A stretch of DNA of 63,000 nucleotides, filler included, from Basidiobolus meristosporus CBS 931.73 (GCA_002104905.1; 3 parts of 3 records of this genome joined end to end with filler, not necessarily neighbours in it), one strand, 5' to 3'; positions 2,125 to 29,660 are shown, numbered from the whole stretch's first letter. The notes: a model not told the origin generated them from the letters alone. Program-made: numbers and translations.

Positions 2125-4222
2125 CTAGTGTTTGGAGGTTTGCGAGGCATTTTTGCTCCAGAGAGCTCCAGAGCGCTGTGTGGGAGAAGGAGAATTTACA
2201 ATGTCACCAAACAGGGTAGCCACCGCTTGCTTTCTGGCAACTTTCTGCATAGCGGTCCCCGCGGAGCGAGGCGTTGAAGTAATTGGTGAAGGCGAAGGTG
2301 AGGATCTATATCGACTCTGGGATCTCATGGATGTCCGCACAAGTTTTGATCGGACGCGAGGCGTCTGTAATTCAGATGCGGAATTTTCATAGCAGGCTGA
2401 ACTAGGGCGAGGAGAAAGCTCTTCCATACTAGGTGCTTGGAGAGGGGTGCGAATAGAATCCCCTGAATCATTTGATGATACAGAGCTATGGCAATCGTCT
2501 GCATTGCTGGTACGCGAAACACTACGGGTTGGACAATGCGAGAATCTGGACACCGGATGTGATGCTGCTGATGTACGAGAAGGAGATAAATGATGTCCGC
2601 CATAGCTAGATGTGCTGCTTGTAGGTCCGGAATAGCTTGCGCTTCGGTCTTTGACATATGTGCCACTGCCGAAGCCAAATAGAGTCAGATTCACCGGGCG
2701 CTCGGCGATTTCCCTATCCAGTACATCCATGTAGCGTTGGTTGTTGTGAATAAAAGGCTTGTTTTCTTGCAACTCGTAGTTTAATATGGCATTGATAAGC
2801 TGCTCCTCAAACTTCAGCAGATTCGGATATGCTTTTTTCCTCCATTTCTCTTCTTGGTTCAGCTGGAAAGAGCTTCGAAATAGACGGCGAGGGTCAGAAG
2901 CAGTCTTCTCAAATTCAATCATCTTGTGAATTAACTGCCGGCGCTCTTGCATTGCAGAGAATATAAGGTGGCATTGGCTGTATAGCTCCTCGAGGCGAAT
3001 GAGCTCTTCACGGATAATATCCGCTCTCTCTACTTTGTTGATGCCCTCCATTATTCGTAGCATGGTAAACCGTTGCTCTTCGCGGCTGATCTCGCATTTC
3101 TCCCAATACTCAGCAAGCTTCTGCTTATAATCGTCAAAAAGCTGGTCCAGATTTATCAGGAGAATCTCTCTCAAGTGCTCGTGCTCCGCTTCCATTTGCG
3201 CCAACGTAGTGTCCTCATAGTCGAGTTGGAATTTCTTTTGCCTCGAGTTGGGGATATCCAGCTCTATGTACAGTCGGTTGATTTTCTTCAGGAGAGTGGC
3301 ATATCGTTGTTTCCGTTCCTCCATAATCCTGGTGTAGCGGCATTGCTTTTGCTTCATCAGCTCGACGCACTCCTTAGATAATTCAAGTGGCGGCTGATTT
3401 GGGGTATACCAGGCCGACTTCTTTGGATGCGGCTTCTGCGAATCTGCAAAATGCTTCTCCTCCTCCAGTGTAAATTGGCGCACAAGGGATTTCTCGATCT
3501 CGTCAGTAGGGGCGAACTTGATATTTTGCCAAGCCTCATACAAGTCGGTGGCTGCTTGATCAAATTCCTGAACCCTGGTCTCTTTGAGTATTGTGATTTT
3601 CGTAGCTGCATACGTTAGGAAGTCGACGGTACTGCGGCTAAAGTCATCGGGCTTCTGGGTAAACCAGCAAAATTAGGCCTCAAGTTCCGGCACAACTGGC
3701 GCAAATACTTAGGCTTACCGGCTTTGGGAGATCCTGCGTTTCGTGCAGCTCTCTGGATAACGCATGCAATGTGTCCATAGCTGCCTCGTGGAGTTGCTTT
3801 TGCCGGGAAAGTTCGGCGTCAAGTGAATTGTTCAGGCTTTTGAGCTCGAGGTAAGTAGTGTAGAGCGATCTTGTGCTGACGGGGGTATACTTGGGTAGGT
3901 ACAAGTCAGCGTTGCGACCTAAGAGTTGGCATTTCTCCTCGATGGACATCTAGAATAGGAAGATAAGAAAATGGGCTAAACTCCAATCAAGTGGTGATTT
4001 CCGATCTACCTCCAAATCCTCAGTCTCTGCCTTTAGCATGGCACACCGCTTAGCTTCGCTGGCGGCAAGTCTATCAAGCTCATGTAAAGCCGGTTGGAGC
4101 TTTCTCTCCACCCAGCTGGGGATAGTACATTTCTTATCTGCACATTTTATCTCTGACTCAAAGTAGCCAAGTTCATTCCAAAGGCTGTAAAGCTGTTGAA
4201 CTCGGTATCGAACTATTTCCAT
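2125..4222 (-). CDS. ASE1: Spindle midzone microtubule-bundling protein, MAP65/Ase1/PRC1 family (about 657 aa); exons 4222-4010, 3949-3719, 3654-2125
   Basis: Two GT-AG introns join three ORF pieces in frame. Conserved motif EFEKTASDPRRLFRSSFQLNQEEKWRKKAYPNLLKFEEQL, coiled-coil rod and Ser/Pro-rich disordered tail with SP/TP sites. Confidence 0.92.
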
Positions 4223-5494
4223 ATTTCAATGAAGGCGCTCTACTGTGGATATTGGCAAAAGGATCTTCTCAGGGGCAATAGTTGAATAATTAGCAATGTC
4301 AGTGGAATCGCAGACGTGAAGGAGGCTGTGACACGCTGTCTAGCGAGTAGGAGGATGGGCCCAGGGTGATGGTAACGGGTTGAGGTAATGTAGTTGTAAG
4401 AATCAACTTAGAAATATAGCATTGAAGGCAACACGTAAGTGAAGGCACATTTATATCAGCGACGAGACATGAAAACATCCTATACAATCCCGGCAACGGC
4501 TAATGAGTTTGATAATTTCCGATCTCTATTGGCTATGGTTTAGGGCAATACATTTTCCTAGAGAAAGGGAGCTTATCTCGACATGAATGACTACATGTGA
4601 GCACTATGAGGTTCATTTTCTAATAATAAGTGACACTCTATTTTCCATTTATGTGGGTGGTTGATTCATTCAAGGCGGTTCATCATTTACATTAGATGAC
4701 AATGAAGTATTGATTTGTTTGAGAATCCTCAATCACGGCAATTCGTCGTGGCTCACCTGTCAACGGCATCACACCGATTCGAATACAATGTAGAACCAAC
4801 GCTAAAGGGCTGGACATAACAGATTTCATGGGAGTTTAACTGATCGATTATGCAGGTGTACCCAATGAGCACCACGGCATCAGAGGATTTTCATCAACTT
4901 GACTAAGACAAAAATGGAACGGATATATTGATGCGCGCAGCTCCACCTGAGTCCTAGACGATACATGAGATTAACTCGGCTGCATCCAAACCGTCTGAAC
5001 CGTTTGGCAGCTTTTCGTAGGGCCTGGATCTCACGCTGATATAGCATTCGGTGCTCTATTTAGCTCCTAACTTTACGCCCTTTCCGGAAGATCCTGGATC
5101 TCCTGATCCCCTAGTAGTGGAGGAAGGCCATGCCAATCTATACAAGCTCTACAATGATAGCAAGCGTTTGATTCAACAATATTAGAACTATCCCATAGAC
5201 TAGCGCCGCTTACCTAATCCGACCGGGATTTTGTCCCGCTTGCCTAATCCTTTGCAACTGGTTGCTGGGCCGATTTTTTGGTCTCAAAATGCTTGCATTC
5301 CCCAGCTGGTGGGTCGGTACCTCGATAGAATAACGCTTGCTAGCGGTATTGGATTCTCGCAATGAACAATCGTTTCCGAGCAACTACCTGATACAAAGAT
5401 GCTCTTTTGGATAGCTTGCGAAATAATCAAAATTTATTGTTCTATAACGAAGTCAACAAGGACGAGCATTCTAGACAGTTTCTTGCGACTAGGT

Positions 5495-8400
5495 CTATCT
5501 ATATTCTACCTGCATTTCCTCTTCCCCCTCCACATCCCCATTCTCTTTGTCCTCCTCATCCTTTTCCATGCCAGCTTCCTTCGATTCAGAGTCCCCATCC
5601 TTCTTCACTCCATTGCCCTTGTTCATGTTCTTGCCGTAACCCATACCCTTGTTGTATTTGACATTGTCCTTTTGGATGGTTTGACCGTACTTGCCCTTAT
5701 CCTTGCTGATGCTCTGACCATGTTGATCATCACTCTTATTTTCATTAATGCTGTGTCCTTGCTTAATTTTGTCCTTGCCGATACTCTGGCCATTCTTGCC
5801 CTTCTTAAGGGTTTTGTCGCTCTTGCCGTATTTGCCCTTGCCAATGCTTTTGTCGGATTTGCCCTTGCTTAGGGTCTTGTTGCTCTTGCCCTTGTTAACG
5901 TTCAGGGTTTTATCGCTCTTGCCCTTGCCAATGCTTTTGCCGTACTTGCCCTTGCTCAGGGTTTTGTCGCTCTTGCTCAGGGTCTTGCCCTTGCCAATGT
6001 TCTTGCCGGATTTGCCCTTGCTCAGGGTCTTGTTGCTCTTGCTCTTGCCCTTGCTAATGCTCTTGTCGGATTTGCCCTTGCTCAGGGTCTTGTTGCTCTT
6101 GCTCTTGCCCTTGCTAATGTTCTTGCCGTATTTACCCTTGTTCAGAGTTTTGTCGCTCTTGCTCTTGCCCTTGCTAATGCTCTTGTCGGATTTGCCCTTG
6201 CTCAGGGTCTTGTTGCTCTTGCTCTTGCCCTTGCTAATGTTCTTGCCGTATTTACCCTTGTTCAGAGTTTTGTCGCTCTTGCTCTTGCCCTTGCTAATGC
6301 TCTTGTCGGATTTGCCCTTGCTCAGGGTCTTGTTGCTCTTGCTCTTGCCCTTGCTCTTGCCAATGCTTTTGCCGCTCTTGCTCTTGCCAATGCTCTTGTT
6401 CAAGGTCTTGCCCTTGTTCAGAGTTGTGTTGCTCTTGCCCTTGTTAATGTTCTTTCCGGATTTGCCCTTGCTCAGGGTTTTGTCACTTTTGCTCTTGCCC
6501 TTGCCAATGCTCTTGCCGGATTTGCCCTTGCTCAGGGTTTTGTCACTTTTGCTCTTGCCCTTGCCCTTGCCAATGCTCTTGTCGGATTTGCCCTTGCTCA
6601 GGGTCTTGTTGCTCTTGCTCTTGCCCTCGCCAATGCTTTTGCCGTACTTGCCTTTGTTCAGAGTTTTGCCGCTCTTGCTCTTGCCAATGCTCTTGTTCAG
6701 GGTTGTGTTGCTCTTGCTTTTGTTAACGTTCTTGCCGGATTTGCCCTTGCTCAGGGTTTTGTCACTCTTGCTCTTGCCCTTGCCAATGCTTTTGCCGTAC
6801 TTGCCTTTGTTCAGAGTTTTGCCGCTCTTGCTCTTGCCAATGCTCTTGTTCAAGGTCTTGCCCTTGTTCAGGGTTGTGTTGCTCTTGCCTTTGTTAACGT
6901 TCTTGCCGGATTTGCCCTTGCTCAGGGTTTTGTCACTCTTGCTCTTGCCCTTGCCAATGCTTTTGCCGTACTTGCCCTTGTTCAGAGTTGTGTTGCTCTT
7001 GCCCTTGTTAATGTCCTTGCCAGATTTGCCCTTGCTCAGGGTTTTGTCATTCTTGCTCTTGCTCTTGTTCATGGTCTTGCCCTTGCCAATGCTTTTGCCG
7101 TACTTGCCCTTGCTCAGGGTTTTGTCGCTCTTACTCTTGCTCTTGCTCAGGGTCTTGCCCTTGCCAATGCTTTTGCCGGATTTGCCCTTGCTCAGGGTTT
7201 TGTCGCTCTTACTCTTGCTCTTGCTCAGGGTCTTGCCCTTGCTCAGGGTTTTGTCACTCTTGCTCTTGCCCTTGCCAATGTTCTTGCCGGATTTGCCCTT
7301 GCTCAGGGTTTTGTCGCTCTTACTCTTGTTCTTGCTCAGGGTTTTGTCGCTCTTGCCCTTGCCCTTGCCAATGTTCTTGCCGGATTTGCCCTTGCTCAGG
7401 GTTTTGTCGCTCTTGCTCTTGTTCAGGGTCTTGCCCTTGTTCAGGGTTTTGTCGCTCTTGCTCTTGTTCAGGGTCTTGCCCTTGTTCAGGGTTTTGTCGC
7501 TCTTGCTCTTGCTCAGGGTCTTGTTGCTCTTGCTCTTGCCCTTGCCAATGCTTTTGCCGTACTTGCCCTTGCTCAGGGTCTTGCCCTTGTTCAGGGTTTT
7601 GTTACTTTTGCCCTTACTCAGGGTATTATCGCTCTTGCTCTTGCTCTTGCTCTTGCTCTTGCCAATGTTCTTGGCGGATTTGCCCTTGTTCAGGGTTTTG
7701 TCGCTCTTACTCTTGCTCTTGCTGGATTTGTCCTTGCTCAGGGTTTTGTTGCTCTTGCCCTTGCTCAGGTTCTTGTTGCTCTTACTCTTGCCAACGCTTT
7801 TGTTCAAGGTCTTGCCCTTCTTCAGGGTTTTGATGCTCTTTCCCTTGCCCTTGCTAGTACTCTTACCGTATTTGCCTTTGTTCAGGGTTTTGTTGCTCTT
7901 GCCCTTGCCATTGCTTTTGCCGTACTTGCCTTTGTTCAGAGGTTTATCGCTCTTGTCCTTGCTCAGGGTTTTGTTGCCCTTGCTCTTGCTCAGGGTTTTG
8001 TTGCCCTTGCTCTTGCTCAGGGTTTTGTTGCCCTTGCTCTTGCTCAGGGTTTTGTTGCCCTTGCTCTTGCTCAGGGTTTTGTTGCCCTTGTCCTTGCTCA
8101 GGGTTTTGTTGCCCTTGCTCTTGCTCAGGGTTTTGTTGCCCTTGCCCTTGCTCAGGGTTTTGTTGCCCTTGCCCTTGCCCAGGGTTTTGTTCAGGGTTTT
8201 ATCGCTCTTGCTCTTGCCAACGCTTTTGCCGTATTTACCCTTGTTCAGGGCCTTGTTACTCTTGCCTTTGTTCAGAGTTTTATCGCTCTTGCCCTTGCCC
8301 TTGCCAATGCTTTTACCGTATTTGCCCTTGTTCAGGGTTTTGTCGCTCTTGCCATATTTGCCCTTGTTCAGGGTTTTATCGCTCTTGCCGTACTTGCCCT

Positions 8401-9292
8401 TTTTCAGGGTCTCGTTGCTCTTGCCCTTGCTCTTATTATTGCTCGTGTTAATGCTCTTGTTAATACTCTTGTTGATACTCTTGTTAATGCTCTTGTTAAT
8501 GCTCTTGTTAATGCTCTTGTTAATGCTCTTGCCGGACTTGCCCTTTTTCAGGGCCTTGTTACTCTTGCGCTTGCCCTTGTTAATGCGCTTGCCGTACTTG
8601 CCCTTGCTCAGGGTTTTGTCGCTCTTGCCTTTGCTTTTGCTAATGCTCTTGCCGTACTTGCCCTTTTTCGGGGTCTTGTTACTCTTGCCCTCGCCTTTTT
8701 TCGCGGCTTTTTCATGCTTGCTGTTGTTGTGCTTTCCGCTCTCTCCGTACCTCATTGTATCGTGTTTGGGTTTTACAACGCCACCTCGTAGCACTGGGTC
8801 ATCTCCGCTAAAGTCCGTATTTTGGTAGAGTCTATAGATGCGGCTAGCGCGCTTGACCCCATGAATGAGATTATCAATCCCTCCGAGCTGCTTCACAAAC
8901 CAATCTGTTTTCTTGAACTTTTTACTCGAGCTGATGATGTTGTAAGCAGTAGCATAATCTGGGCCTTCAGTTTTGATCAATGCATCGGCTGCATCACTCA
9001 AATTCACACCTAGCTTCTTCCCATATTTGTTCATGTAGTTGTGAAAGAGTCTATTGGCGATCGTGCCTTTGATTCCACCACCTGCCAACTTCTTGATCAG
9101 ATTGGATTTTCCACCAAACCCAAGAAATTCATCCTTCATGGCAGGATCGAGTTCAAGCTCATTCAGGGCAGGATCCACATCCATCACTTCATTCTCCTTC
9201 AACTCCATATGCCGTGGCATGGCAGTCACTGAGGGAGCTGCTATCACCAAGCCTGCCAGAAAGGCAATGATCTCTGAACTAGATACTTTCAT
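5495..9292 (-). CDS. Secreted lysine-rich low-complexity repeat protein, 1265 aa, single exon
   Basis: 3.8-kb uninterrupted ORF with N-terminal signal peptide (MKVSSSEIIAFLAGLVIAAPSVTA), a non-repetitive N-domain, about 1000 aa of K/S/G/N/T repeats and an acidic C-tail. TATAAATA lies about 70 nt upstream of the ATG. Confidence 0.85.
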   Translation of the reverse strand: MKVSSSEIIAFLAGLVIAAPSVTAMPRHMELKENEVMDVDPALNELELDPAMKDEFLGFGGKSNLIKKLAGGGIKGTIANRLFHNYMNKYGKKLGVNLSDAADALIKTEGPDYATAYNIISSSKKFKKTDWFVKQLGGIDNLIHGVKRASRIYRLYQNTDFSGDDPVLRGGVVKPKHDTMRYGESGKHNNSKHEKAAKKGEGKSNKTPKKGKYGKSISKSKGKSDKTLSKGKYGKRINKGKRKSNKALKKGKSGKSINKSINKSINKSINKSINKSINKSINTSNNKSKGKSNETLKKGKYGKSDKTLNKGKYGKSDKTLNKGKYGKSIGKGKGKSDKTLNKGKSNKALNKGKYGKSVGKSKSDKTLNKTLGKGKGNKTLSKGKGNKTLSKSKGNKTLSKDKGNKTLSKSKGNKTLSKSKGNKTLSKSKGNKTLSKSKGNKTLSKDKSDKPLNKGKYGKSNGKGKSNKTLNKGKYGKSTSKGKGKSIKTLKKGKTLNKSVGKSKSNKNLSKGKSNKTLSKDKSSKSKSKSDKTLNKGKSAKNIGKSKSKSKSKSDNTLSKGKSNKTLNKGKTLSKGKYGKSIGKGKSKSNKTLSKSKSDKTLNKGKTLNKSKSDKTLNKGKTLNKSKSDKTLSKGKSGKNIGKGKGKSDKTLSKNKSKSDKTLSKGKSGKNIGKGKSKSDKTLSKGKTLSKSKSKSDKTLSKGKSGKSIGKGKTLSKSKSKSDKTLSKGKYGKSIGKGKTMNKSKSKNDKTLSKGKSGKDINKGKSNTTLNKGKYGKSIGKGKSKSDKTLSKGKSGKNVNKGKSNTTLNKGKTLNKSIGKSKSGKTLNKGKYGKSIGKGKSKSDKTLSKGKSGKNVNKSKSNTTLNKSIGKSKSGKTLNKGKYGKSIGEGKSKSNKTLSKGKSDKSIGKGKGKSKSDKTLSKGKSGKSIGKGKSKSDKTLSKGKSGKNINKGKSNTTLNKGKTLNKSIGKSKSGKSIGKSKGKSKSNKTLSKGKSDKSISKGKSKSDKTLNKGKYGKNISKGKSKSNKTLSKGKSDKSISKGKSKSDKTLNKGKYGKNISKGKSKSNKTLSKGKSDKSISKGKSKSNKTLSKGKSGKNIGKGKTLSKSDKTLSKGKYGKSIGKGKSDKTLNVNKGKSNKTLSKGKSDKSIGKGKYGKSDKTLKKGKNGQSIGKDKIKQGHSINENKSDDQHGQSISKDKGKYGQTIQKDNVKYNKGMGYGKNMNKGNGVKKDGDSESKEAGMEKDEEDKENGDVEGEEEMQVEYR
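5760..8710 (-). repeat. Coding tandem repeat array (12-, 27-, 60- and 120-bp periodicities)
   Basis: (KSIN)n near 8450-8530 and (KSKGNKTLS)n near 7960-8180. The 20-aa unit KSISKGKSKSDKTLNKGKYG recurs; the sequence lines at 6061/6181 and 6121/6241 are identical. Confidence 0.95.
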
Positions 9293-9361: not shown

Positions 9362-9369
9362 TATTTATA
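9362..9369 (-). promoter_or_regulatory. TATA box of the Lys-rich secreted protein gene
   Basis: TATAAATA on the minus strand, followed by a pyrimidine-rich leader to the ATG at 9292. Confidence 0.55.
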
Positions 9370-11068: not shown

Positions 11069-11856
11069 ATGAGTAGAAAAACTTTGTTTGTTGTTGGTTT
11101 TGGTTCAAGCTTACGTGCTCGTGACTTGGCTTATGAGTTTGAAAGGTACTAGGGTCGGGCTTGTCCTTAGTTGCAAGGTCTAATAGCACATGTAAACATA
11201 GATATGGACGTCTTATCCGTTGTGATATCCCGGCACCCAAAAGTCATTCGTCCAGACTGTAAGTAACCATCTTTGTTGAGATACCCGTTTAGAGCCACAC
11301 AAATATGATAAAGCACGTCCTCATCCACCTTTTCGCACAAACAAACAAAAGCTTCGCCTTCGTTGAGTTTGAGGATTCTAGAGACGCCGAGGACGCATAT
11401 GTGGAAATGCATGGGAGGAGTCTTGACGGTCACGCCCTAAGTGTCCAGGTATGTATGGGCTCCCTACCGGATTTGCTTGTCAGCCTAGTAACCCTATTAA
11501 TGAGTGTTTCTCAGTGGGCCAAGAATGCTCCGCCTAAAGGCTGGAGGGGAGGCAGGTCTCGCTCACCCCGCCTTAGTAGCCATTCGCACTCACGTGATCG
11601 CAGTTGGTCACCTCAGGGTAGTCGCGGCCGCCGCTCATACTCACGTTCCCGTTCCCCCACCCACGAGCATGCCATAGGTAATAAGCGTCGGCCAGGATCG
11701 AGGAAGCCCCATTCACGCTCGCCACCTCCAATACGCTCACCAGTACGCATTCGTTCGCCTGATTCCGAAAAAAGTGATTCTAATGGCCACCAGAGACCAC
11801 GCTCTACCTCCCCCATTGACTCGCCTAGCAAAGCAATGTCTGAGCCACAGGATTGA
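11069..11856 (+). CDS. srp1: SR-family splicing factor (RRM + RS domain), S. pombe Srp1-like; exons 11069-11145, 11202-11258, 11352-11448, 11515-11856
   Basis: Spliced product [61 protein letters not shown]...WAK followed by RS/RSP repeats. [10 protein letters not shown] and RCDIP are characteristic of fungal Srp1. Confidence 0.9.
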
Positions 11857-12508: not shown

Positions 12509-13648
12509 CTATTCCATGGTACGCCCTCGGTTGAAGAAACCGCGGATGCCCTCGCGAATGGCGTGGAATGGGCCTCCCTTGGGGTGCCCTTTCTTGTCAT
12601 CGCTCTTGCTTTCTTGTTTGGTGTCGCCCTTGGCCGGGTCCTCCTTTTTCGTGGCATCCTTGAGCGGTGAGTCTGCTTTGGCTTCGCGCTTTTCGACTGC
12701 TCTAGGATTTTCCCGGTCGAAGAACTCTCTGAAGGAGTCTGTAAGTCTTTGGAAAGCACTTGTATCATCCTTCTTTGCGTCGTCCTTCTTTGCGTCGTCC
12801 TTCTTTGCATCGTCCTTCTTTGCATCATCCTTCTTTGCATCATCCTTCTTTGCATCGTCCTTCTTTGCATCGTCCTTCTTTGCATCGTCCTTCTTTGCAT
12901 CGTCCTTCTTGGCATCGTCCTTCTTTGCATCGTCCTTCTTTGCATCGTCCTTCTTGGCATCATCCTTCTTTGCATCGTCCTTCTTGGCATCGTCCTTCTT
13001 GGCATCGTCCTTCTTTGCATCGTCCTTCTTTGCATCGTCCTTCTTTGCATCATCCTTCTTTGCATCGTCCTTCTTGGCATCATCCTTCTTTGCATCGTCC
13101 TTCTTGGCATCACCTTTGCCCAAAATACGTTGTAATGCGGAGAACGCCTCTTGAATCAAGGTATCAGCTTTGGCGGAATCTTTTGGAAGAAGATTACGCC
13201 TAGTTAAGGCCGCAGTAATTTTGGCCTTCAGCACACTTTCTGGAGGAACCTGCTTTGCCTGACGTTTTTCTACTACCTTCTTCTGTTTGTTGAGCATGAT
13301 AAGCTCTTGAGTTATCTTCTGGATGGCTAGTTTATGCGACTCTTGTTCGCCAGATACATCCTTTGGATGCTTTTTTTTGACCATATGAAGTATCTCCTGG
13401 ACCAAACCCTCCTGCTTCGCATGCTCTTTCGGTAGCACGTTTCCGTGGGATAACTCGTTTTTGATCATCATGATCAAATTGGTATCTTTGTTGGGTAACT
13501 GGATATTTTGATTCGGACGGCCAATAATGGTATCTTGTTTACCCATGAGCTCTGCCTCGGTAGCCCCACTGTCGCCAAGAGCCTGGGCCATTGTGCCCAC
13601 GACACAAATGGCAAAGGCCACTTTAGTGAGTATTCCTGATGCACGCAT
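12509..13648 (-). CDS. Secreted modular protein, 379 aa, with (DAKKD)23 and two VEKR dibasic sites
   Basis: Signal peptide [23 protein letters not shown]; single exon; TATATAAA at 13830-13837 upstream. The overlapping ORFs in other frames are repeat shadows. Confidence 0.85.
12764..13111 (-). repeat. 15-bp tandem repeat, 23 copies, encoding DAKKD
   Basis: Unit ttctttgcatcgtcc on the + strand; variation is confined to synonymous positions. Confidence 0.97.
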
Positions 13649-19710: not shown

Positions 19711-20609
19711 ATGACCCCTACCCAGGTCGAGGTGGAAGCTAACTCTCCTTCGGTATCAGCCAACGAATGCGCTTCGAACGGCGGGAAACCATCCAAGGTG
19801 ATGGACGAGGCCTTGCTTGAAAAGATGCGGGCCGAGAACCGGGAAAGGAAGAAGAAGTGGAGACAGCAGAACGAAGAAAGAAGTAAGTGCCCCTTCCCCA
19901 TGCCGTGGGTGGTTCCTTTTGGCCCGGTGCTAACCAGTTTCCTGTAGACAAGGATAATGACCTTCGTTGTCGGGTGAACAAACGTGCGAACAAGTTGTTC
20001 GGTCCGGGTCCCAGCGACCACAAGACCCGTTGGACCGAGGAGGAGTTCAAGAAACGTCAGCAGAAGCGTAAGGAAAAAGAGCGCCGCAAGCTTATGGTTT
20101 CTGGCACCTCCACTATGGACGGAGGTCATATCATGATGAACGGCCAAGTCCCTCTGACCTCAGCCCCGCTTTCTGGCATGATCCACATGAGCGGTCCATC
20201 GAGCAGCGGATTCGTTAGTCCATCTCAGTACAGTAATATGGGGGTCCCGATTCCGATGCCCTACACTGGGGTTAGCTCTCACCCCATGAGTCTGCTCAAC
20301 ATGAATGCGAATGTCGCCAACAGCAACGGGCCCAGCTTGCCAAGTGTTAGCAGCAGCGCAGTGAATGGGATGTCCTTGATGGGCCCCATCCTGCCTCTTC
20401 CCAACAACACGGCCACCTTCAAATACGCCATCTCGACCAACCCTCACCCGGCCATCAGCGCGCCTAGTTCAACCAAAATGGTCAGCCCGGCCCCCGTCAA
20501 GAGTGAGTCGTCGTCGTGCGCCCCGGACTATCCCATGGATGCGGTGATGACCTTGATGCAGTTGAACTCGGGATGGCAGGGATGTAATCGGGATGTCAGA
20601 ACTAACTGA
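19711..20609 (+). CDS. DUF3020-family fungal nuclear protein; exons 19711-19882, 19948-20609
   Basis: Spliced motif RAENRERKKKWRQQNEERNKDNDLRCRVNKRANKLFG...WTEEEFKKRQQKR. The 65-nt intron has a GTAAGT donor and a GCTAAC branch site. Confidence 0.85.
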
Positions 20610-22609
20610 GCCTTTCGTTAGACCACCGACCCCGTTCGCCTCTGATACCATCTCAATATCCAATATATAGATAGAGTAATACTTCCCCTCCCGGGAACCA
20701 TTTAATAATTTCTCTCCTTTCCTACTCCCCTACCCTCCCATCTCCCTTCTCTTTAGTATCCCATGGAAATGCTCCTCTCGGTGTGCTCCCGGTCGGAGTC
20801 CACCTTCATTCGCATACACCCCCTAGGTGACCAACCTCCCGCCCCCCTAGAATCCCCATCATAGAGCAATGGGCTTTTGCGCTTAGATTCCCTCGGCAGC
20901 CGATCTGCCTTACTGTCTTGACTGGCCTCACATGTTCCATCCACACTTCCATTCCACCATCATCACCCCCATACCACCATTGCCATTACCATTGCCATCG
21001 CCATCGCCACCACCATTTCCATTTCATGTAAATTCTTGAATCCCTTCCCCCGATTAAACGTGCTCTGATCTGCCGCACTTCATGGTTCCCATCGTATTGT
21101 ATGTTTGCGCTTATTTGTGTGGGGTGGTCCATTGGGAGGTGTGCGGCATCTTGATCGAAGATACCCGCGTCCGACCGAGGTTGGAAATCTGGTGTGCCGC
21201 GTCCGAGAGAGATGCCCTCGCTGCGAAGGCCAGCGATGGGAGGGGGGCCTTGGCTGTTGCAAGGTGTCCATCCAGTCGTCTAGCTATCTCCGGACTCTCA
21301 ATGGTATCCAATGCCCTGCTTTGAGGCCGACCACCAGACAGCACCATGAATAATCCTCCCATGGCTCGCGGTGTCAATAGCCAATTTGCCAAGCAGTAAA
21401 CTGGATTGGAATGGCGATGCTACCAATTTTCCTTCCCGAGGGGGAGGGAATAGTGAGGAAACTTTTTTTTTGGGGGGGGTGGGAGGAGCAAGGATAGAGG
21501 AGTTTACCGCAACATGTTGACGGACTCGTGTAGAGTTGGTCTCCTCACTTTACATCTGCAATGGTGGCCGATGGTTTCTATGGGGTAGCTCAGGTGCGGC
21601 GCGGGTTGGATATTTGGAAAGGGTACCGAACCTGGTGTATGGACCGCCTTGAAAGCGCCTACTTCTTGACATTTCCGGGGATTCTTTCATATCATCCTAC
21701 GCCAACAATGTCAAAGTATTCACATTTCGCCAGAAGGTTGGCCCAACATGATGCTGATATACCACCAGTCTAGAGGTCGTGGTGATGCTCACTCACACGT
21801 ACCATTCAACCCGTGGGTTTCCGGTGCCCTTGATCACCTGCTTTCCGGACCATTGGGCTCGTCTGCTTTGAATGGATGGTTGTTGATTTGGGTCACCATG
21901 TTATCTGTTGGGTAGCGCAGGGACGTAGCCATACGTTCCAGTGGGCAATCAGTAGTTTGGGTCGTTCGTCCGGTCGATATTCTCTGATCTGTCTAAAACC
22001 AACTATGGCCCACACCTCTCGAGGAAACTCTACTGCTGTGTTCCGTGCTTGATCTTGCCATGCCCCATCAAAAGTATGCCTGGTAAGCTCGCCTGAGCAT
22101 ATCACACCGAATCATATGCCATCTCCCCATCAGATGTACCCCCCCTCCAGTAGAAACTTCTCCCCAACCCCATCGGAATGCCACAGGAAGTTCAGTGGTA
22201 TCTCAACGTGGCCTTACCCACGCTATTTGCAAAATCCGGGTCATGGGTCGTTTAAGGAAAACTCTGCGAAATAGGTAGACGCTGAGCAAACCGCTTCCCA
22301 TACGACATAGGAATTCTAGCCACCTTCTTTCACATCAGCCGTGGGCCCTGCTTAATAGTGAGGATAGGAGTGCTTGGACGTGATGGGGGGGGAGGACTTT
22401 TTTGGTGTTTCCACTATTTCCAGGAGTTAGTGAATCTCGCTCAAAACCAATTCACAGCCTGTATATGCCATTGACGGTCTCTCCGGTGGAATTGTTGACC
22501 ATGGTCTTCAAGACTTATTGGCTGGGTTAGAATGCGCAGAACCCATAAAACCGCCTGTTTGACCCGTAGAGGCGTCAACGGGGCGGAATTAGCAGATGAG
22601 ATCAATAAC

Positions 22610-22941
22610 TGTTGTAATAATTCGTAATTCCACCTAAATATTCACCTAACCTAGTCACTTAGATCATTACCCTCAAATCCTAGAGTATACTGACCAAATT
22701 CCTTGTCGGGATTTACTTGGAATATTTACCCAGAACATGAAAATTAGATAAGTTGTCCAAACTGCCCCAAACTTTGCACACATGTTCTTGGGACCTTCTT
22801 AAACCTATTTTACATGTTTGTTATACCAAGACCATGTAAAAGTATAAATACTACTTTTACATTCAATAGATCATCAAGTGAAAGCCACATAATCTACTTG
22901 TTCTCCCAATCACTTCCAATATCTCCAATACTCTTACAACA
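22610..22941 (+). mobile_element. Solo LTR of the copia family (short 332-bp variant)
   Basis: TGTTGTA...TTACAACA termini, no PBS after it, flanks ATAAC/CTAAC (TSD with one mismatch). Confidence 0.88.
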
Positions 22942-23359
22942 CTAACCCCATCAATAGAAATACCTCTTTGGATGATCAGACAAAATCTGGGACATTGCAT
23001 ACCACTAATAAGAATGCATCAGTAATAGTATCAACCAGGCAAAGTTGTAATCTGAGATATCAAATCTGCCTCTGGCTAATAGTTCTATTGATATATTTAC
23101 TTTTGTATCACCTGTGCGGAAAATTTGCTAATTACACCTCAATATTCACTTTTTAGTCTACAAAGCATAAAGATTTGGCCAAGTGTCTTGTTATAATTTA
23201 TCTGGAATACTGAACATATATATCATATATGCAGGACACAAACAACCAAAGAATTTGCAAACACCCCTGAACTTTGCATATGGACCCTTGGGTCCTTCTT
23301 AAACATAATCTATATGTTTGCTTTGCTGCTACTGTGCAAAAGCTCAAGTACAGTTCTTA

Positions 23360-24350
23360 CATTAAATCATTCGTCCAAAATACTATGTTCACACCTAAAT
23401 ATCCACTCAACTTATTCACTTGGATCATAGTCAACAAATACTGGACATGGCAGCCAATATTCCCTGTCAGGATCTACTTGGAGTATTCTCACCTGGTATT
23501 GGCAACATGAAAAATCATCACAATTAGCTAACAGCAGCAAACTTTGCATACATGCTCCTGGAGCCTTCCCATGGATATTATAAATCTTGTGACTACACTA
23601 AATCTTCCCTAATTTAGTGACTTGGATCATTTCCTACAAGCCTCAGAGAATTCTAACTAATTTCCTTGGCAGGATTTACTTAAAATATTCTCACCAAAAT
23701 GTTAGGTATCCAAAACATGAAATCTCAAACATTGCCCAAGCAGCCCCAAGCTTTGCACACATGCACTTGGGACCTTTGTATACATATTCTGTGTGTCTGG
23801 ATTGCCAAGACCATGTAGAAGTATAGATACTACATTTGCATTCAACAAATTATCAAATGAAGACCCTATAATCTGTGTGTTCTCCTAAGAACTTCCAGTA
23901 TCACCAAAACTTTTACAACAGGCTAAGAGCCCTAAGCTGTCACTCTCCAGAATGTGTACTACTATCACTGTAACTTTTCCCTCTGCTGAGAAGTTAAATA
24001 GATGTAACATTCAAATCTAGAAGATGAAGCTGAAGATGCTGAAACAGGACAGTGACCTCAGGATATTGCTATGGGAGAAGGATACCCTCCTAAAGGTGTA
24101 GGCAAAGAAGTCTTAAGTACCAGAAAAAAGAACATAGTGCCTTCAGCTGCAATTGCCTGAATGATAAATACAGCTTGCCAATTCAATGCCCAAAAGCAAA
24201 AACAGCAACAAATGCCTGGAAGGCATTGGAAGTAAACCTACCAGGCATGTTCAGCTGCTAAGAAAATATATTATTGACAAATATTTGGTACTGTTTTGAT
24301 GCTCCCTGAAAAAAAAAAAATGAAAAATCCAATTAACAGAACTACCCTGT
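23360..24350 (+). mobile_element. Old, heavily decayed copia LTR fragments plus LTR-PBS-gag start
   Basis: Diverged LTR copies ending ...TTACAACA near 23920, decayed PBS GGCTAAGAGCCC, and a gag remnant with stops and indels. Confidence 0.8.
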
Positions 24351-24353
24351 TAG

Positions 24354-24910
24354 TGTTATGAATAGACACAAGGCAGGAGAGTAGAGCTAGGCAAGGCAGG
24401 ACTAGGAAAGGACTTAGGTGTGGATCAACAAGGCAAGATGTGTTTCTAAGGCAAGGCAGATTTCCAAGGCAAGGCTGTTTATTTAAGACCTGTGTTTATC
24501 AGACTGAGGAATACATAAGGGGGGATAAGACTATATATACTTTTTGGCAATGTGGATGCTAAGAGATATTGGCTAATACTGATGGGCTCTGGGATGAGGC
24601 ACAGTCAGTGTGCCAAGATAGAATATACCAATGAACAGACTGGAATATCACATGGAGATATGTCAGGGGTCAGCTGATCATGTGACTAGGTCATGTGACA
24701 TGCAGTTACCATATATGGCATGACACTATACAAATTCTAATGGGAAGCTTCCATAGAATGTTCCATTCTGTAACATTGACTTGGAGCTTTCAAGAAGTTG
24801 CTAGAATGTAGTAGAACTTTGTAGAAGGAGCTGGGATTTCTTCACTGACTTGATTTGGCTATAAAATTGGAGACCAGGGATGTCATGTGATCATGGCAGT
24901 TAGTTGATAA
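24354..24910. repeat. Unrelated non-coding repeat or LTR-like fragment of another family
   Basis: TGTTA...TAACA (24354-24775) with internal CAAGGCA and TCATGTGA reiterations. No TSD found. Confidence 0.35.
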
Positions 24911-26753
24911 TGTTGTAAAACTTTGTAATTCCACCTAAATATTCACCTAACTTAGTCACTTAGATCATTACCCTCAAATCCTAGAGAATACTGACCAAAT
25001 TCCTTGTTGGGACTCACTTAGAATATTTTCACCAAAATACCAGGTACCCAGAACATGAGAATTCTTAAAGTTGTCCAAACAGCCCCAAACTTTGCACACA
25101 TGTTCTTGGGACCTTCCTCAACCTATTTGACGTGTTTGTAATGCCAAGACCAGGTAAAAGTATAAATACTACTTTTACATTCAATAAATCATTAAGCAAA
25201 AACCACATAATCTACTTGTCCTCCCAATCACTTCCAACATCTCCAAGACTCTTACAACAGGTTATGAGCCCCAAGCTGTCACTCTCTGCAATGTCTACTA
25301 CTGCTATTACTGGAATTTTTCCCTTTGCTGAAAAGTTGGATGGATCTAACTACCAAGTGTGGAAGGTGAAGATGAAGATGCTGCTACAAGAAAGAGGCCT
25401 TTGGGATATTGTCATGGGGGAAGAATGCCCTCCTAAAAATGTGGGAGAGGAAGCCTTAAAGTACCAGAAGAAAGAACAAAGTGCCTTTAACTGCATTTGC
25501 CTTAATGTCAAGCACAAATTGCTAATTCAATGCTCAAGTGCAAAAACGGCAAAGAATGCCTGGAAAGCATTAGAAGACACCTACCAGTCATGTTCAACTG
25601 CCAAGAAAATGTATCTGAGACAAAAATTCTTTACTACAAAGATGCTGCCAGGAGAAGAAATGAAAAATCTAATTAACAGCATTACCCTGCTGGTAGATGA
25701 GATGGAATCTGTGGGCGTACCAACTACTGATGAGGATGTGATAGTTAGCATCCTGAATAGCCTGACAGACAAGTTCCAGGGCCTTGTATCAGCCTTAGAG
25801 TCCAGAACTGAAGATTTGACCTTAAATTACATATATGGAAGGCTCCTGGATGAAGAATTAAGAAAAACAAGCGCCAATAAGAAGGAAGGAGAAAGTGCTT
25901 TAATAAGCAATGATAACCAACAAAGGAGGTACCCAAGACCCTACAAAGGCAACAGCAACCTATTTTGCAACTACTGCAAAAGGAAAGGACACACATCAGA
26001 CCGGTGTCTCAAAAAGAGAGATTATCAGCAAAAGAAGCCTGAATATGGAAATGCTGCAACAACTGAAGATAGATTATTCATATCTGCACTAAATATGACC
26101 ACAAACAAGGATTCTCAGACGTGGTATATTGACTCTGGAGCTTCTCAACACTTCACACACCAAAAAGAACTTTTTACCCATTATCAAGAAATTCCAATTA
26201 AGAAGGTTTTCATGGGTGACAATAGAACACTTGATGCAGTGGGAGAAGGAACTATCCAAGTAAACCTTAGAAGCAGTGAAGGAAGCCATACACTGACCTT
26301 TAAAGAAGTACTCTATGTACCAGAAATAGCCAAGAACCTACTCTCTGTAAGCAAGGCCACAGCAGAAGGACTCAGTTTCAGTTTTGACAATTCTGGATGC
26401 AGGATCACTGATCAAAATGGTGCTCATATTGCTTTGGGCATCAGAGATCAGAATCTATACAAGTTGACTTATATTCCATCATATCTGGAAGCCAATATAA
26501 GTAACTTAAATGAAGAAACACCAATGCTTTGGCACAGGAGATTTGGACACATCAATTTTGATTATTTGCGTAAAATGATCAAAGATCAGCTAATTTCTGG
26601 AGTGAAAATTAATCCCCCAGCTATTTTGGAGTACTGTGAAGCCTGCATATATGGGAAACAAGCCAGACAACTGTTCAAGAGCTCTGGGCTAATCAAAACT
26701 AAGAAAAAATTAGATTTAATTCACTCAGATCTGTGTGGACCTATGCAAAATTT
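24911..26753 (+). mobile_element. Ty1/copia copy 1: 5' LTR 24911-25259, PBS, gag-protease-start of integrase; interrupted by copy 2
   Basis: Open ORF 25132-26772 with CNYCKRKGHTSDRC zinc knuckle, WYIDSGASQH protease and WHRRFGH...CEAC. It switches abruptly into a new LTR after DLCGPMQN. Confidence 0.95.
25260..25271 (+). promoter_or_regulatory. Primer-binding site complementary to the tRNAiMet anticodon stem-loop (half-tRNA priming)
   Basis: GGTTATGAGCCC directly abuts the LTR end and is the reverse complement of GGGCUCAUAACC in initiator tRNA-Met. Repeated at 27104, 33813 and 40666, with a variant at 32946 on the minus strand. Confidence 0.9.
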
Positions 26754-29560
26754 TGTTGTAAAAAATTTGTAATTCCACCTAAATATTCACCTAACTTAGT
26801 CACTTAGATCATTACCTTCAAATCCTAGAGAATACTGACCAAATTCCTTGTCGGGATTTACTTAGAATATTTTCACCAAAATACCAGGTACCCAGAACAT
26901 GAAAATTCTCAAAGTTGTCCAAACAGCCCCAAACTTTGCACACATGTTTTTGGGACCTTCCTTAACCTATTCTATGTGTTTGTTATGCCAAGACTTGGTA
27001 AAAGTATAAATACTACTTTTACAATCAATAAATCATTAAGTGAAAACCACATAATCTACTTGTTCTCCAAATCACTTCCAATATCTCCAAGACTCTTACA
27101 ACAGGTTATGAGCCCCAAGCTGTCACTCTCTGCAATGTCTACTACTGCTATTACTGGAATTTTTCCCTCTGCTGAAAAGTTGGATGGATCTAGCTACCAA
27201 GTGTGGAAGGTGAAGATGAAGATGCTGCTGCAAGAGAGAGGCCTTTGGGATATTGTCATGGGAGAAGAATGCCCTCCTAAAAACGTGGGAGAGGAAGCCT
27301 TAAGGTACTAGAAGAAAGAACAAAGTGCCTTTAACTGCATTTGCCTTAATGTCAAGCACAAATTGCTAATTCAATGCTCAAGTGCAAAAACGGCAAAGAA
27401 TGCCTGGAAAGCATTAGAAGACACCTACCAGTCATGTTCAGCTGCCAAGAAAATGTATCTGAGAAGAAAATTCTTTACTACAAAGATGCTGCCAGGAGAA
27501 GAAACAAAAAATCTAATTAACAGAATTACCCTGCTGGTAGATGAGATGGAATCTGTGGGCATACCAACTACTGATGAGGATGTGATAGTTACCATCATGA
27601 ATAGCCTGACAGACGAGTTTCAGGGCCTTGTATCAGCCCTAGAGTCCAGAACTGAAGATTTGACCTTAAATTACGTATATGGAAGGCTCCTGGATGAAGA
27701 ATTAAGAAAATCAAGCGCCAATAAGAAGGAAGAAGAAAATGCTTTAATAAGCAATGATAACCAACAAAGGAGGTACCCAAGACCCTACAAAGGCAACAGC
27801 AACCTATTTTGCAACTACTGCAAAAGGAAAGGACACACATCAGACCGGTGTCTCAAAAAGAGAGATTATCAGCAAAAAAAGCCTGAATATGGAAATGCTG
27901 CAACAACTGAAGATAGACTATTCATATCTGCACTAAATATGACCACAAACAAGGATTCTCAGACGTGGTATATTGACTCTGGAGCTTCGCAACACTTTAC
28001 ACACCAAAAAGAACTTTTTACCCAATATCAAGAAATTCCAATTAAGAAGGTTTTCATGGGTGACAATAGAACACTTGATGCAGTGGGAGAAGGAACTATC
28101 CAAGTAAACCTTAGAAGCAGTGAAGGAAGCCATACAATGACCTTTAAAGAAGTACTCTATGTACCAGAAATAGCCAAGAACCTACTCTCTGTAAGCAAGG
28201 CCACAGCAGAAGGACTCAGTTTCAGTTTTGACAATTCTGGATGCAGGATCACTGATCAAAATGGTGCTCATATTGCTTTGGGCATCAGAGATCAGAATCT
28301 ATACAAGTTGACTTATATTCCATCATATTTGGAAGCCAATATAAGTAACTTAAATGAAGAAACACCAATGCTTTGGCACAGGAGATTTGGACACATCAAT
28401 TTTGATTATTTGCGTAAAATGATCAAAGATCAGCTAATTTCTGGAGTGAAAATTGATCCCCCAGCTATTTTGGAGTACTGTGAAGCCTGCATATATGGGA
28501 AACAAGCCAGACAACTGTTCAAGAGCTCTGGGCTAATCAAAACTAAGAAAAAATTAGATCTAATTCACTTAGATCTGTGTGGACCTATGCAAAATTTATC
28601 CTTAGGCGGGATGAAGTATTTAATCACTTTTATTGATGATTATACAAGATACACATGGGTCTACTTCATGGAGAGAAAGGAAGAAGCTCTGTCTAAGTTC
28701 AGGGAGTTTAAAGCCGTGGTGGAGAGAGAAACTGGTGAAAAAATCAAGAAAATATGCTCTGACAATGGTGGAGAATACACCTCCAAACTCTTCATCCACT
28801 TCTGCAAAATTCATGGGATAAAGCAAGAGACTACTGTACCTTACTCCCCACAGCACAATGGAGTAGCAGAATGAGCTAACAGATCAATAATTGATATGGC
28901 AAGATCTATGATCCATGATCAAAAATTATCCTATGATTTTTGGGCGGAATCAGTTGCCACTGCTGTATATCTTAAAAATAGGAGTTATAACAGAATACTT
29001 TGTGATTCTACTCCATTTGAAGCATGGTATGGATACAGACCAAGTGCAGAACATCTAAGAATATTTGGGTGTACAGCATATGCCAAAAAACTGGCCGGAA
29101 ATCAGTCAAAATTTGAGCCAAAAAGTGTAAAATGCATATTTTTGGGCTACTGCAATGAGAGTAAGGCATACAGACTCTACAATACCAAAGCAAAGAAGCT
29201 GATCAAGTCCAGGGATGTGTTGTTTGATGAAGATTCAAAATTTTCACAAAAAATGACATCAGATGATGACGAAAATTTGATCTCAAGTCCACCAATTGTC
29301 AGGATTGAATCAGAGCAAAACAATGAAAATTTTTTCACTCCAGAGGACTCTACAACCGTGGTTCAGCCAGAATCAGTGCCCAGGAATATCCCGGAAGTGA
29401 TCATTCCAGTATCAAATGCCTGGAGATCCAATCGGACAAGAAATAGCCCAAATTACTATATTAATGAGGGTACAAACTTAGCCTATGCCTATTCAGTCCA
29501 TATTGATGAACCCCAGACTGTAAAAGAGGCCCTAAATAGCCCTCAGACAAAGTTTTGGAG
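26754..29560 (+). mobile_element. Ty1/copia copy 2 nested in copy 1: LTR 26754-27103, gag-PR-IN with nonsense codons at 27309 and 28872; runs into a gap
   Basis: ORFs 26976-27311, 27363-28874 and 28896-gap are in one frame, separated by TAG and TGA. Integrase motifs IDDYTR, SDNGGEY and NGVAE are present. Confidence 0.95.
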
Positions 29561-29660
29561 NNNNNNNNNNNNNNNNNNNNNNNNNNNNNNNNNNNNNNNN
29601 NNNNTTAATTAATTAANNNNNNNNNNNNNNNNNNNNNNNNNNNNNNNNNNNNNNNNNNNN
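29561..29660. other. Scaffold gap (100 nt of N with TTAATTAATTAA six-frame-stop linker)
   Basis: N-run with an embedded artificial linker; an identical structure is at 47454-47553. Confidence 0.98.

Follow-up and report, generated by a model that had tools for sequence, protein, structure and literature searches.

A predicted secreted lysine-rich polycation of Basidiobolus meristosporus, formed by recent tandem duplication behind the N-terminal module of a genus-restricted family

Results

Gene structure and composition

The window, a 63,000-nucleotide stretch of DNA from Basidiobolus meristosporus CBS 931.73 (GCA_002104905.1; three parts joined end to end with filler), carries on its minus strand a complete coding sequence for an exceptionally lysine-rich protein (Table 1). 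It looks like a real gene because the reading frame is intact, a TATAAATA box lies at −70, an AATAAA follows the stop codon, and the N-terminal domain is 38–55% identical to five Basidiobolus proteins over its first ~150–179 residues. The gene prediction thus appears well supported, and from its product we infer a physicochemical role. The exact protein is not present in a collection of 15 billion proteins, though the product of the neighboring gene is, which may mean that this gene is missing from the deposited annotation or is modeled differently there; the ESM Atlas contains the exact sequence letter for letter. An antisense, leucine-rich open reading frame of 1026 residues (5748..8828, plus strand) arises as a side effect of the codons used.

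Table 1. Features of the gene and its product, in window coordinates
Feature	Position	Strand	Details or basis
Complete intronless CDS	5495..9292	−	1265 codons, ATG start, TAG stop at 5495-5497; N-domain homologues in the same frame
TATAAATA box	9362..9369	−	70-77 nt upstream of ATG
AATAAA, polyadenylation-signal-like	5433..5438	−	About 57 nt past the stop
aa 1-24, predicted signal peptide (MKVSSSEIIAFLAGLVIAAPSVTA)	9221..9292	−	Hydropathy; conserved in family
aa 25-57, conserved acidic segment, pro-region-like	9122..9220	−	Net −7; −7 to −10 across 6/6 members
aa 58-150, predicted basic all-helical core	8843..9121	−	Net +10, invariant GGG-x-KG; family alignment, charge, AF2 at low confidence
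aa 151-190, linker	8723..8842	−	Resembles B. ranarum P0003 to about aa 179, unique beyond
aa 191-1180, Lys/Ser/Gly/Asn/Thr/Leu tandem-repeat polycation	5753..8722	−	Composition, repeat analysis, self-alignment
aa 1181-1265, degenerate repeat grading into acidic tail (...EKDEEDKENGDVEGEEEMQVEYR)	5498..5752	−	Composition, charge

Lysine makes up 28.9% of the 1265-residue protein, followed by serine (16.0%), glycine (13.8%), and asparagine (8.1%); there is no cysteine, and tryptophan, proline, and glutamate occur 1, 9, and 25 times. Within the repeat (residues 191–1180) these preferences sharpen to 33.4% Lys, 18.6% Ser, 14.5% Gly, 8.4% Asn, 7.0% Thr, and 6.6% Leu, with two prolines, four glutamates, two glutamines, and neither cysteine nor tryptophan. 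The computed net charge is +292 (~+290) and the computed pI 10.45. Lysine-to-lysine spacings of 2, 3, and 4 occur 131, 93, and 98 times, the tetrapeptides KYGK and KSGK 18 and 13 times, and tyrosine accounts for 17 of the 990 repeat residues (1.7%). A preliminary description of this locus had reported about 1000 residues in which about every third is lysine, with Ser, Gly, Asn, and Thr as spacers, regular KYGK and KSGK motifs, and a near absence of Cys, Trp, Pro, and Glu, and these counts bear it out. The protein also contains 48 N-x-S/T sequons, 45 of them within the repeat, compared with 21 ± 4 in shuffled sequences. With 45 sequons and a Ser+Thr content of 26%, the repeat has the potential to be glycosylated. 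Neither the sequons nor the acidic character of the last ~65 residues had been part of the preliminary description.

The signal peptide was assigned by eye and from Kyte–Doolittle hydropathy, rather than with a trained predictor. Windows of 15 residues exceed 1.6 at residues 3–12 only, and the hydrophobic stretch at residues 3–26, the sole one in the protein, suits a signal peptide ending in ...PSVTA immediately before MPR. This sequence after the hydrophobic segment is conserved in the family and places V-T-A at positions −3 to −1. The N-terminus is kept in all six family members, which agrees with the signal peptide proposed earlier, and the domain that follows is indeed non-repetitive from residue 25 to about residue 190. 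Composition and the conserved signal-like N-terminus together support the original picture of a secreted, giant, fungal polycation. Hydropathy and sequence inspection revealed no transmembrane segment, GPI-like C-terminus, or HDEL/KDEL signal in the 1265-residue protein.

A family of N-terminal domains found in Basidiobolus

The N-domain defines a small, uncharacterized, genus-specific family. Its homology search, proposed in the preliminary description, matched five Basidiobolus proteins: K7432_006013, K7432_006080, K7432_006405, and K7432_006406 from B. ranarum and K493DRAFT_389985 from B. meristosporus, none of them characterized. An N-domain profile run against 1.84 billion representatives retrieved P0003–P0006 at E-values of 3e-38 to 3e-57 (hmmsearch); these four Basidiobolus clusters were the only matches apart from a bacterial GGID-repeat protein (E 6e-5), which was judged spurious. 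P0002 was matched by phmmer at E 1.4e-31, and tblastn gave 40–55% identity across residues 1–140/179. The statement that no fungal family could be recognized therefore holds as far as characterized families are concerned, with no Pfam match, but fails in that the N-domain does belong to a family, albeit a small and uncharacterized one.

Outside this family, the searches returned no relatives. Pfam gave no family at E-values up to 1 for the whole protein and the N-domain, and nothing for the five relatives. When the N-domain region was run in a word-indexed search against proteins of 696–2214 residues, no relative emerged; the same type of search with repeat residues 560–1100 yielded none among 8000 candidates, an absence that is weak evidence owing to the HMMER bias correction. 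Neither the N-domain profile nor a degenerate KGKYGKSIGKGK pattern had a match in the metagenomes scanned; in the ESM Atlas, the N-domain query returned no usable match and the repeat query only low-complexity look-alikes with scores of 0.81 or less. PDB sequence searches were without significant match. AF2 predicts the N-domain to be all-helical from the six-sequence alignment (pLDDT 48, poor), and a Foldseek search of the PDB with this model found nothing at E ≤ 0.001; the single-sequence AF2 model of P0003 was unusable (pLDDT 33).

One layout is common to all six members: a predicted signal peptide, an acidic segment (−7 to −10), a basic helical core, and a basic tail. The core carries +10 here and 0 to +11 across the family, and the C-terminal tails of the other members carry +2 to +15. 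Four members are only 161–200 residues long, with tails of 11–52 residues, the 52-residue tail of P0006 being rich in Lys, Ser, and Asp. The closest relative, P0003 from B. ranarum (388 residues), has an unrelated C-terminal region of ~200 residues without the repeat. In contrast to these relatives, the protein in the window alone carries a ~1000-residue lysine repeat, and this polycationic region is a hypertrophied form of the family's short basic tail.

The succession of signal peptide, acidic segment, and cationic region resembles that of cationic antimicrobial peptide precursors. The family might accordingly comprise cationic protein precursors directed against bacteria or other competitors, with the anionic segment as a neutralizing pro-piece and the lysine tail agglutinating or permeabilizing gut and soil bacteria in the manner of protamine or polylysine. 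The conservation of this layout in all six members, an amphipathic helix at residues 137–155 (hydrophobic moment 0.62), and the bacteria-rich herptile guts that Basidiobolus inhabits (PMC10964425, PMC9391592) are in line with such a function. However, the ~20 acidic residues are too few to neutralize a charge of +292, Pfam, PDB, and Foldseek searches revealed no homology to antimicrobial families, and processing sites between the repeats are lacking (three KR, no RxL). We regard an antibacterial function as a lesser possibility.

Repeat architecture, selection, and age

The repeat modules end in KTL[S/N], and the 20-residue unit reads KGK[Y/S]GK[S/N]I[G/S]KGKSKS[D/N]KTL[S/N]. Tandem Repeats Finder detected nested periods of 12, 27, 45, 60, 78, 120, and 153–180 nt between ~5794 and 8689, and the 1050 self-alignment HSPs within the repeat all have offsets divisible by three. 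Across aligned copies, lysine is retained at 95%, Ser/Gly at 60%, and Asn/Asp at 35%. Single-base differences in lysine codons number 1918 at position 3, compared with 73 and 119 at positions 1 and 2. The HSP pairs behind these counts are not independent of one another, and lysine codons partly anchor the alignments. Spacer codons, in which Gly, Ser, Asn, and Asp interchange, differ mainly at positions 1 and 2, and overall each codon position has an even share of the mismatches between repeat copies, suggesting little sequence constraint apart from Lys, Leu, and Thr. A pN/pS of 0.22 from regex-selected units is biased by unit selection, and the unbiased self-alignment counts were used instead. 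Lysine retention between repeat copies is thus selective.

The tail has grown to ~1000 residues by very recent tandem duplication. One block of 120 nt is duplicated at 100% identity, and further blocks comprise 45 nt in three copies at 97% and 120 nt in 3.6 copies at 93% identity. The GC3 of 0.80 in the repeat, versus 0.51 in the N-domain, is a founder-unit effect. Because the nearest B. ranarum homologue lacks it, the repeat may be young and dispensable.

An array this young, containing an identical 120-nt duplicate and missing from the closest homologue, could also be a neutral runaway minisatellite within, or in place of, the tail of a gene for a small secreted protein, weakly or not at all expressed, or partly an artifact of assembly or annotation. 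The overall even distribution of mismatches, the absence of the exact model from the 15-billion-protein collection, and the failure of protein and metagenome searches to find relatives of the repeat point the same way. Yet the frame is still open over 3.8 kb despite many indels, every one a multiple of three; position-3 changes in lysine codons are in 10- to 26-fold excess, the promoter and polyadenylation motifs are intact, and a basic tail is conserved throughout the family. We think this reading unlikely.

Genomic neighborhood

The same strand carries, at a distance of 3.2 kb, a second charged-repeat gene, which encodes a predicted secreted (KKDDA)x23 polyampholyte, and the contig contains copia elements. 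A match to HC2 belongs to this KKDDA gene; it is below the Pfam cut-off and compositional.

Sandcastle worms build coacervate glues from oppositely charged repeat proteins. The present protein could be a component of a glue or complex coacervate at the adhesive tip of capilliconidia or in another sticky stage, perhaps together with its KKDDA neighbor. Its predicted secretion, its polycationic nature, and its Tyr, Ile, and Leu "stickers" at regular intervals would suit this, as would the fact that Basidiobolus makes adhesive capilliconidia (PMC13370150). Against it, the KKDDA neighbor is zwitterionic rather than polyanionic, and B. ranarum also makes capilliconidia, yet its closest homologue is without the repeat. 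The 17 tyrosines (1.7%) also fall well short of the 10–27 mol% found in DOPA glues. A dedicated glue appears distinctly improbable.

The copia elements and the second secreted repeat gene on the contig, together with an extremely basic, NLS-like composition, would also be compatible with an effector acting on host or prey cells, in which the lysine-rich region would mediate cell penetration or nuclear/nucleolar targeting and nucleic-acid binding after secretion. Secreted repeat-containing nuclear effectors do occur in other early-diverging fungi (PMC11085264). However, translocated effectors are not typically so large (135 kDa) or so highly charged (+292), Basidiobolus is chiefly a saprobe and gut commensal, and the protein shares no homology with known effectors. 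This function is very unlikely.

Comparison with known protein classes

The protein was compared with silaffin-like proteins by the operational screen of PMC5501833, which calls for an ER signal peptide, KXXK motifs (X = S or G) 1–6 residues apart, pentalysine clusters, and RXL sites. It contains 14 strict K[SG][SG]K and 100 KxxK motifs, and pentalysine-type clusters (at least 5 non-adjacent lysines per 14 residues) fill 574 windows spanning residues 210–1177 and covering 922 residues. RxL is absent throughout, and all relatives come from the fungus Basidiobolus. With diatom silaffins and cingulins it shares K/S/G-rich regions, here behind a putative signal peptide, which makes for a compositional class without homology, whereas it is much longer than silaffins, is rich in Asn, Thr, and Leu as well, and comes from a non-silicifying fungus. 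A true silaffin was rejected on the absence of homology and RxL and on the non-silicifying organism.

Lys/Gly-rich tandem repeats with tyrosine beside lysine (KYGK) recall mussel Mfp-3/5 and sandcastle-worm Pc1/2/4/5, and here too a secreted, disordered product is predicted, but there is no homology. DOPA glues contain 10–27 mol% Tyr, and at 1.7% Tyr in the repeat, set against a threshold of at least ~10 mol%, a DOPA glue was likewise rejected. The resemblance to silaffins and to mussel glue is compositional only.

Among fungal proteins, Ustilago Rep1/Rsp3 and the Flo/Als adhesins combine a signal peptide, which is predicted here as well, with a long, fast-evolving intragenic tandem array, and repeat number is likely to vary in the present array. 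Those proteins are rich in Ser/Thr/Pro or in Gly, are acidic or neutral, and in many cases undergo Kex2 processing or carry a GPI or PIR anchor; in contrast, the protein described here carries +292, has three KR sites, and lacks a GPI signal and a PIR motif. A Kex2-processed repeat protein (KEP) was rejected, with KR at residues 147, 235, and 241 only and no RR, and so was a GPI/PIR wall protein, the C-terminus being acidic and hydrophilic, with no hydrophobic window past residue 26 and only 2 Gln in the repeat. Extreme lysine content and low complexity are shared with histone H1/HC2. A histone H1-like protein was rejected on the lack of a Pfam match, the conserved signal-like N-terminus, and the absence of Ala/Pro-rich H1-type repeats.

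Discussion

These observations lead us to a reading that we hold to have about an even chance of being correct, namely, that this is a lineage-specific gene in which the N-terminal module of the family is joined to an amplified basic tail, and that its product is a secreted polycation binding polyanionic surfaces as a coat or adhesive. In this reading, the module of the genus-restricted family supplies the predicted signal peptide, the acidic segment, and the basic helical core, and recent tandem duplication has enlarged the C-terminal tail, once tens of residues long, to about 1000. We predict an extracellular product that is intrinsically disordered and probably glycosylated, a polycation of ~135 kDa before modification, whose activity would reside in the density and spacing of its lysines, supplemented by sparse conserved Leu, Ile, and Tyr. 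Multivalent electrostatic binding to polyanionic surfaces, such as the fungus' own wall polymers, bacterial envelopes, mucus, or cuticle, would then result in a non-covalent coat or adhesive. The roles of glue, coacervate, mineralizing agent, and polyanion binder are all consistent with the composition, and those of glue, coat, antibacterial agent, and effector cannot be separated on this evidence.

A bolder version would see in the repeat a ribosomally made, polylysine-like polymer of ~1000 residues with selected charge spacing, arisen by runaway amplification within one species and serving as a wet adhesive or coacervate matrix (for instance, a capilliconidial haptor glue) or as a coat that agglutinates bacteria. 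We consider this improbable; if true, a class of biomaterial protein new to fungi would have evolved here in convergence with silaffins and the cement proteins of marine animals.

We found no paper on the protein or its relatives, and the small family of predicted secreted proteins defined here has not been described before. If expressed and secreted, the protein would be among the most highly charged extracellular proteins of any fungus and would offer a natural case of a short basic tail turned into a giant polycation by minisatellite dynamics, with lysine spacing under selection. It bears on the birth of orphan secreted repeat proteins and on fungal silaffin-like or polylysine-like peptides as possible biomaterials. 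Basidiobolus is a symbiont of the herptile gut and occasionally a pathogen of humans, and the protein also bears on how this fungus adheres to or coats surfaces and handles gut bacteria.

A Basidiobolus-specific protein family

All relatives of the N-domain, the non-repetitive part (aa 25 to ~190) of the window protein encoded by the Lys-rich ORF, are Basidiobolus proteins: one belongs to B. meristosporus CBS 931.73, the other four to B. ranarum. Among 1.84 billion representatives, the only other match was a bacterial repeat protein, which was judged spurious. The five relatives (P0002–P0006) are 40–55% identical to the N-domain (tblastn), with E-values of 1.4e-31 for P0002 (phmmer) and of 3e-38 to 3e-57 for P0003–P0006 (hmmsearch). 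The family displays a 24-residue signal-like N-terminus ending PSVTA|MPR, then an acidic segment of 33–45 residues (net charge −7 to −10), followed by a basic, helical core (net 0 to +11) with an invariant GGG-x-KG motif. Each relative also has a basic tail (net +2 to +15), which comprises 11–52 residues in four of them and in P0003 is mostly an unrelated region of ~200 residues. Judged by its sequence, the window protein is a member of this uncharacterised family, with the same architecture but a tail enlarged to ~1000 residues. The preliminary description recognised no fungal family; this holds in that none is characterised, but phmmer, hmmsearch and tblastn all place the N-domain with the five Basidiobolus proteins.

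The closest relative is P0003 from B. ranarum (K7432_006013), which shares 54% identity through aa ~179 and carries its unrelated ~200-residue C-terminal region (aa ~190–388) in place of the Lys repeat. This region has no Pfam or PDB match; it may reflect a true domain swap, or else a fused gene model that conceals a collapsed repeat. P0004 and P0006 have adjacent locus tags (K7432_006406 and K7432_006405) on one 18-kb B. ranarum contig, which suggests that the family expanded by local tandem gene duplication. The 52-residue, K/S/D-rich tail of P0006 resembles a seed from which the giant repeat could have grown.

Composition and reading frame of the repeat

Lys, Ser and Gly make up 28.9, 16.0 and 13.8% of the whole window protein, respectively. 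Its repeat (aa 191–1180) contains 33.4% Lys, 18.6% Ser, 14.5% Gly, 8.4% Asn, 7.0% Thr and 6.6% Leu; Pro and Glu occur 2 and 4 times, Cys and Trp not at all. It has a computed net charge of +292 and pI of 10.45. Of the 364 intervals between consecutive lysines, 322 measure 2, 3 or 4 residues, and KYGK and KSGK occur 18 and 13 times in the protein. The giant Lys-rich repeat described earlier is thus borne out by ORF and composition. The repeat is modular: KTL[S/N] closes most modules, a 20-residue unit, KGK[Y/S]GK[S/N]I[G/S]KGKSKS[D/N]KTL[S/N], is common, and KSKGNKTLS and SINK runs occur eight times each. Over the final ~65 residues the repeat is lost and the sequence becomes acidic.

Features in the window
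Feature	Position	Strand	Remarks
Lys-rich ORF	5495-9292	-	single open frame, 1265 codons, ATG start
TATAAATA box	9362-9369	-	70 nt upstream of ATG
AATAAA		-	57 nt past stop
Nested periods	~5794-8689		12-180 nt (Tandem Repeats Finder)
Antisense ORF	5748-8828	+	1026 aa, Leu/Pro/Arg-rich, runs through repeat
MAP65/Ase1 gene	2125-3543	-	E 3e-23
RRM protein gene	11305-11856	+
(KKDDA)x23 protein	12509-13648	-	379 aa, signal-like N-terminus, 3.2 kb upstream of Lys-rich ORF
KKDDA repeats	12760-13111		23, near-perfect, 15-nt period, 93% matches
SPP41/DUF3020 gene	19887-20609	+
AT-rich block	22500-29560		GC 0.37-0.40 (elsewhere 0.45-0.54), at least two copia-type LTR retrotransposon copies
Copia gag, pre-integrase, integrase, SH3-like ORFs	25132-26772, 27363-28874, 28896-29612

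The case for the Lys frame as the coding frame rests on four lines of evidence. The five Basidiobolus proteins are homologous to its first ~150–179 residues, which share the frame of the repeat, and the ORF is flanked by the upstream box and AATAAA signal listed in the table. In self-alignments of the repeat, which are partly anchored on Lys codons, all 1050 ungapped alignments are offset by a multiple of three, and aligned copies retain 95% of Lys, 81% of Leu, 73% of Thr, 60% of Ser/Gly and 35% of Asn/Asp. Counted over pairs of copies, and hence not as independent events, single-base differences in Lys codons number 73, 119 and 1918 at positions 1, 2 and 3, whereas spacer codons differ more at positions 1 and 2 (2239 and 2138) than at position 3 (1058). 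Pooled over all codons, mismatches are even across the three positions; together with the retention of Lys, this indicates constraint on the identity and spacing of Lys and on sparse Leu and Thr. The spacers appear free of it, drifting among G/S/N/D. A neutral runaway minisatellite is an improbable explanation, given that Lys codons are conserved, the frame has been kept open and basic tails occur throughout the family.

The antisense ORF was rejected as a gene, since its frame is open because TTA, CTA and TCA codons are nearly absent from the sense strand. The exact window protein is present in the ESM Atlas and absent from a large protein collection; the deposited annotation may therefore differ.

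Origin of the repeat and genomic surroundings

A 120-nt block (aa 992–1031) is repeated with 120/120 identity; other blocks comprise 45 nt (3.1 copies, 97%), 120 nt (3.6 copies, 93%) and 78 nt (3.2 copies, 91%). GC3 reaches 0.80 in the repeat, compared with 0.51 in the N-domain and 0.50–0.68 in neighbouring genes. This restriction of high GC3 to the repeat points to codon bias inherited from an amplified founder unit rather than to translational selection. No relatives of the repeat were found among long proteins, and the KGKYGKSIGKGK coding pattern had zero occurrences in 241 million metagenome records.

The Lys-rich ORF lies on a eukaryotic, fungal contig, which also carries MAP65/Ase1, RRM and SPP41 genes and copia retroelements. 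The MAP65/Ase1, RRM and SPP41/DUF3020 ORFs, probably exons of spliced genes, represent ordinary eukaryotic housekeeping functions and confirm a fungal nuclear contig. The neighbouring KKDDA protein is, by virtue of its 23 repeats, a zwitterionic polyampholyte; it forms a singleton cluster (NCBI, UniRef, EukProt), and an HC2 identity was dismissed as compositional, with a Pfam score under the cut-off. The copia-bearing AT-rich block places the secreted repeat genes near a transposon-rich compartment.

Predicted secretion and structure, and comparison with known systems

The sole hydrophobic segment of the window protein is aa 3–26, and no transmembrane segment, GPI-like end or HDEL/KDEL signal was found in it, so that we infer a soluble secreted protein. 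The repeat contains 45 N-x-S/T sequons versus 21 ± 4 in shuffles, although its units are not independent; with a Ser+Thr content of 26%, this makes heavy glycosylation possible. The N-domain model is all-helical at low confidence (pLDDT 48), with no structural or PDB sequence match.

By silaffin-like screening criteria (PMC5501833), the proposed silaffin likeness of the KxxK repeats stands for composition, with 100 KxxK motifs and pentalysine-type clusters spanning aa 210–1177. Against it, no more than 14 motifs are strict K[SG][SG]K, RxL sites number zero, and the producing organism is a fungus. The suggested likeness of the KYGK repeats to DOPA-based mussel glues is unsupported because Tyr accounts for just 1.7% of the repeat. 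Membership tests placed the protein outside the KEP, GPI-anchored, PIR and histone H1/HC2 groups, and Pfam returned zero families.

Proposed role

In the best-supported reading, in which we have about even confidence, the protein is an extracellular disordered polycation. Its Lys-rich repeat would bind polyanionic surfaces through multivalent electrostatic interactions, the bound polycation forming a non-covalent coat or adhesive, while the N-domain would contribute whatever activity the family members have in common. Several sub-roles are compatible with such a polycation and are not separated here. One is a general coating or adhesive function. An antibacterial role of the polycation is suggested by the acidic, pro-piece-like segment that precedes the cationic body; the protein could also be a host-directed effector, or a glue or coacervate of capilliconidia, in which the neighbouring secreted (KKDDA)x23 protein would be a candidate partner. 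Secreted fungal tandem-repeat proteins form a broad class, of which the window protein is a new cationic variant.
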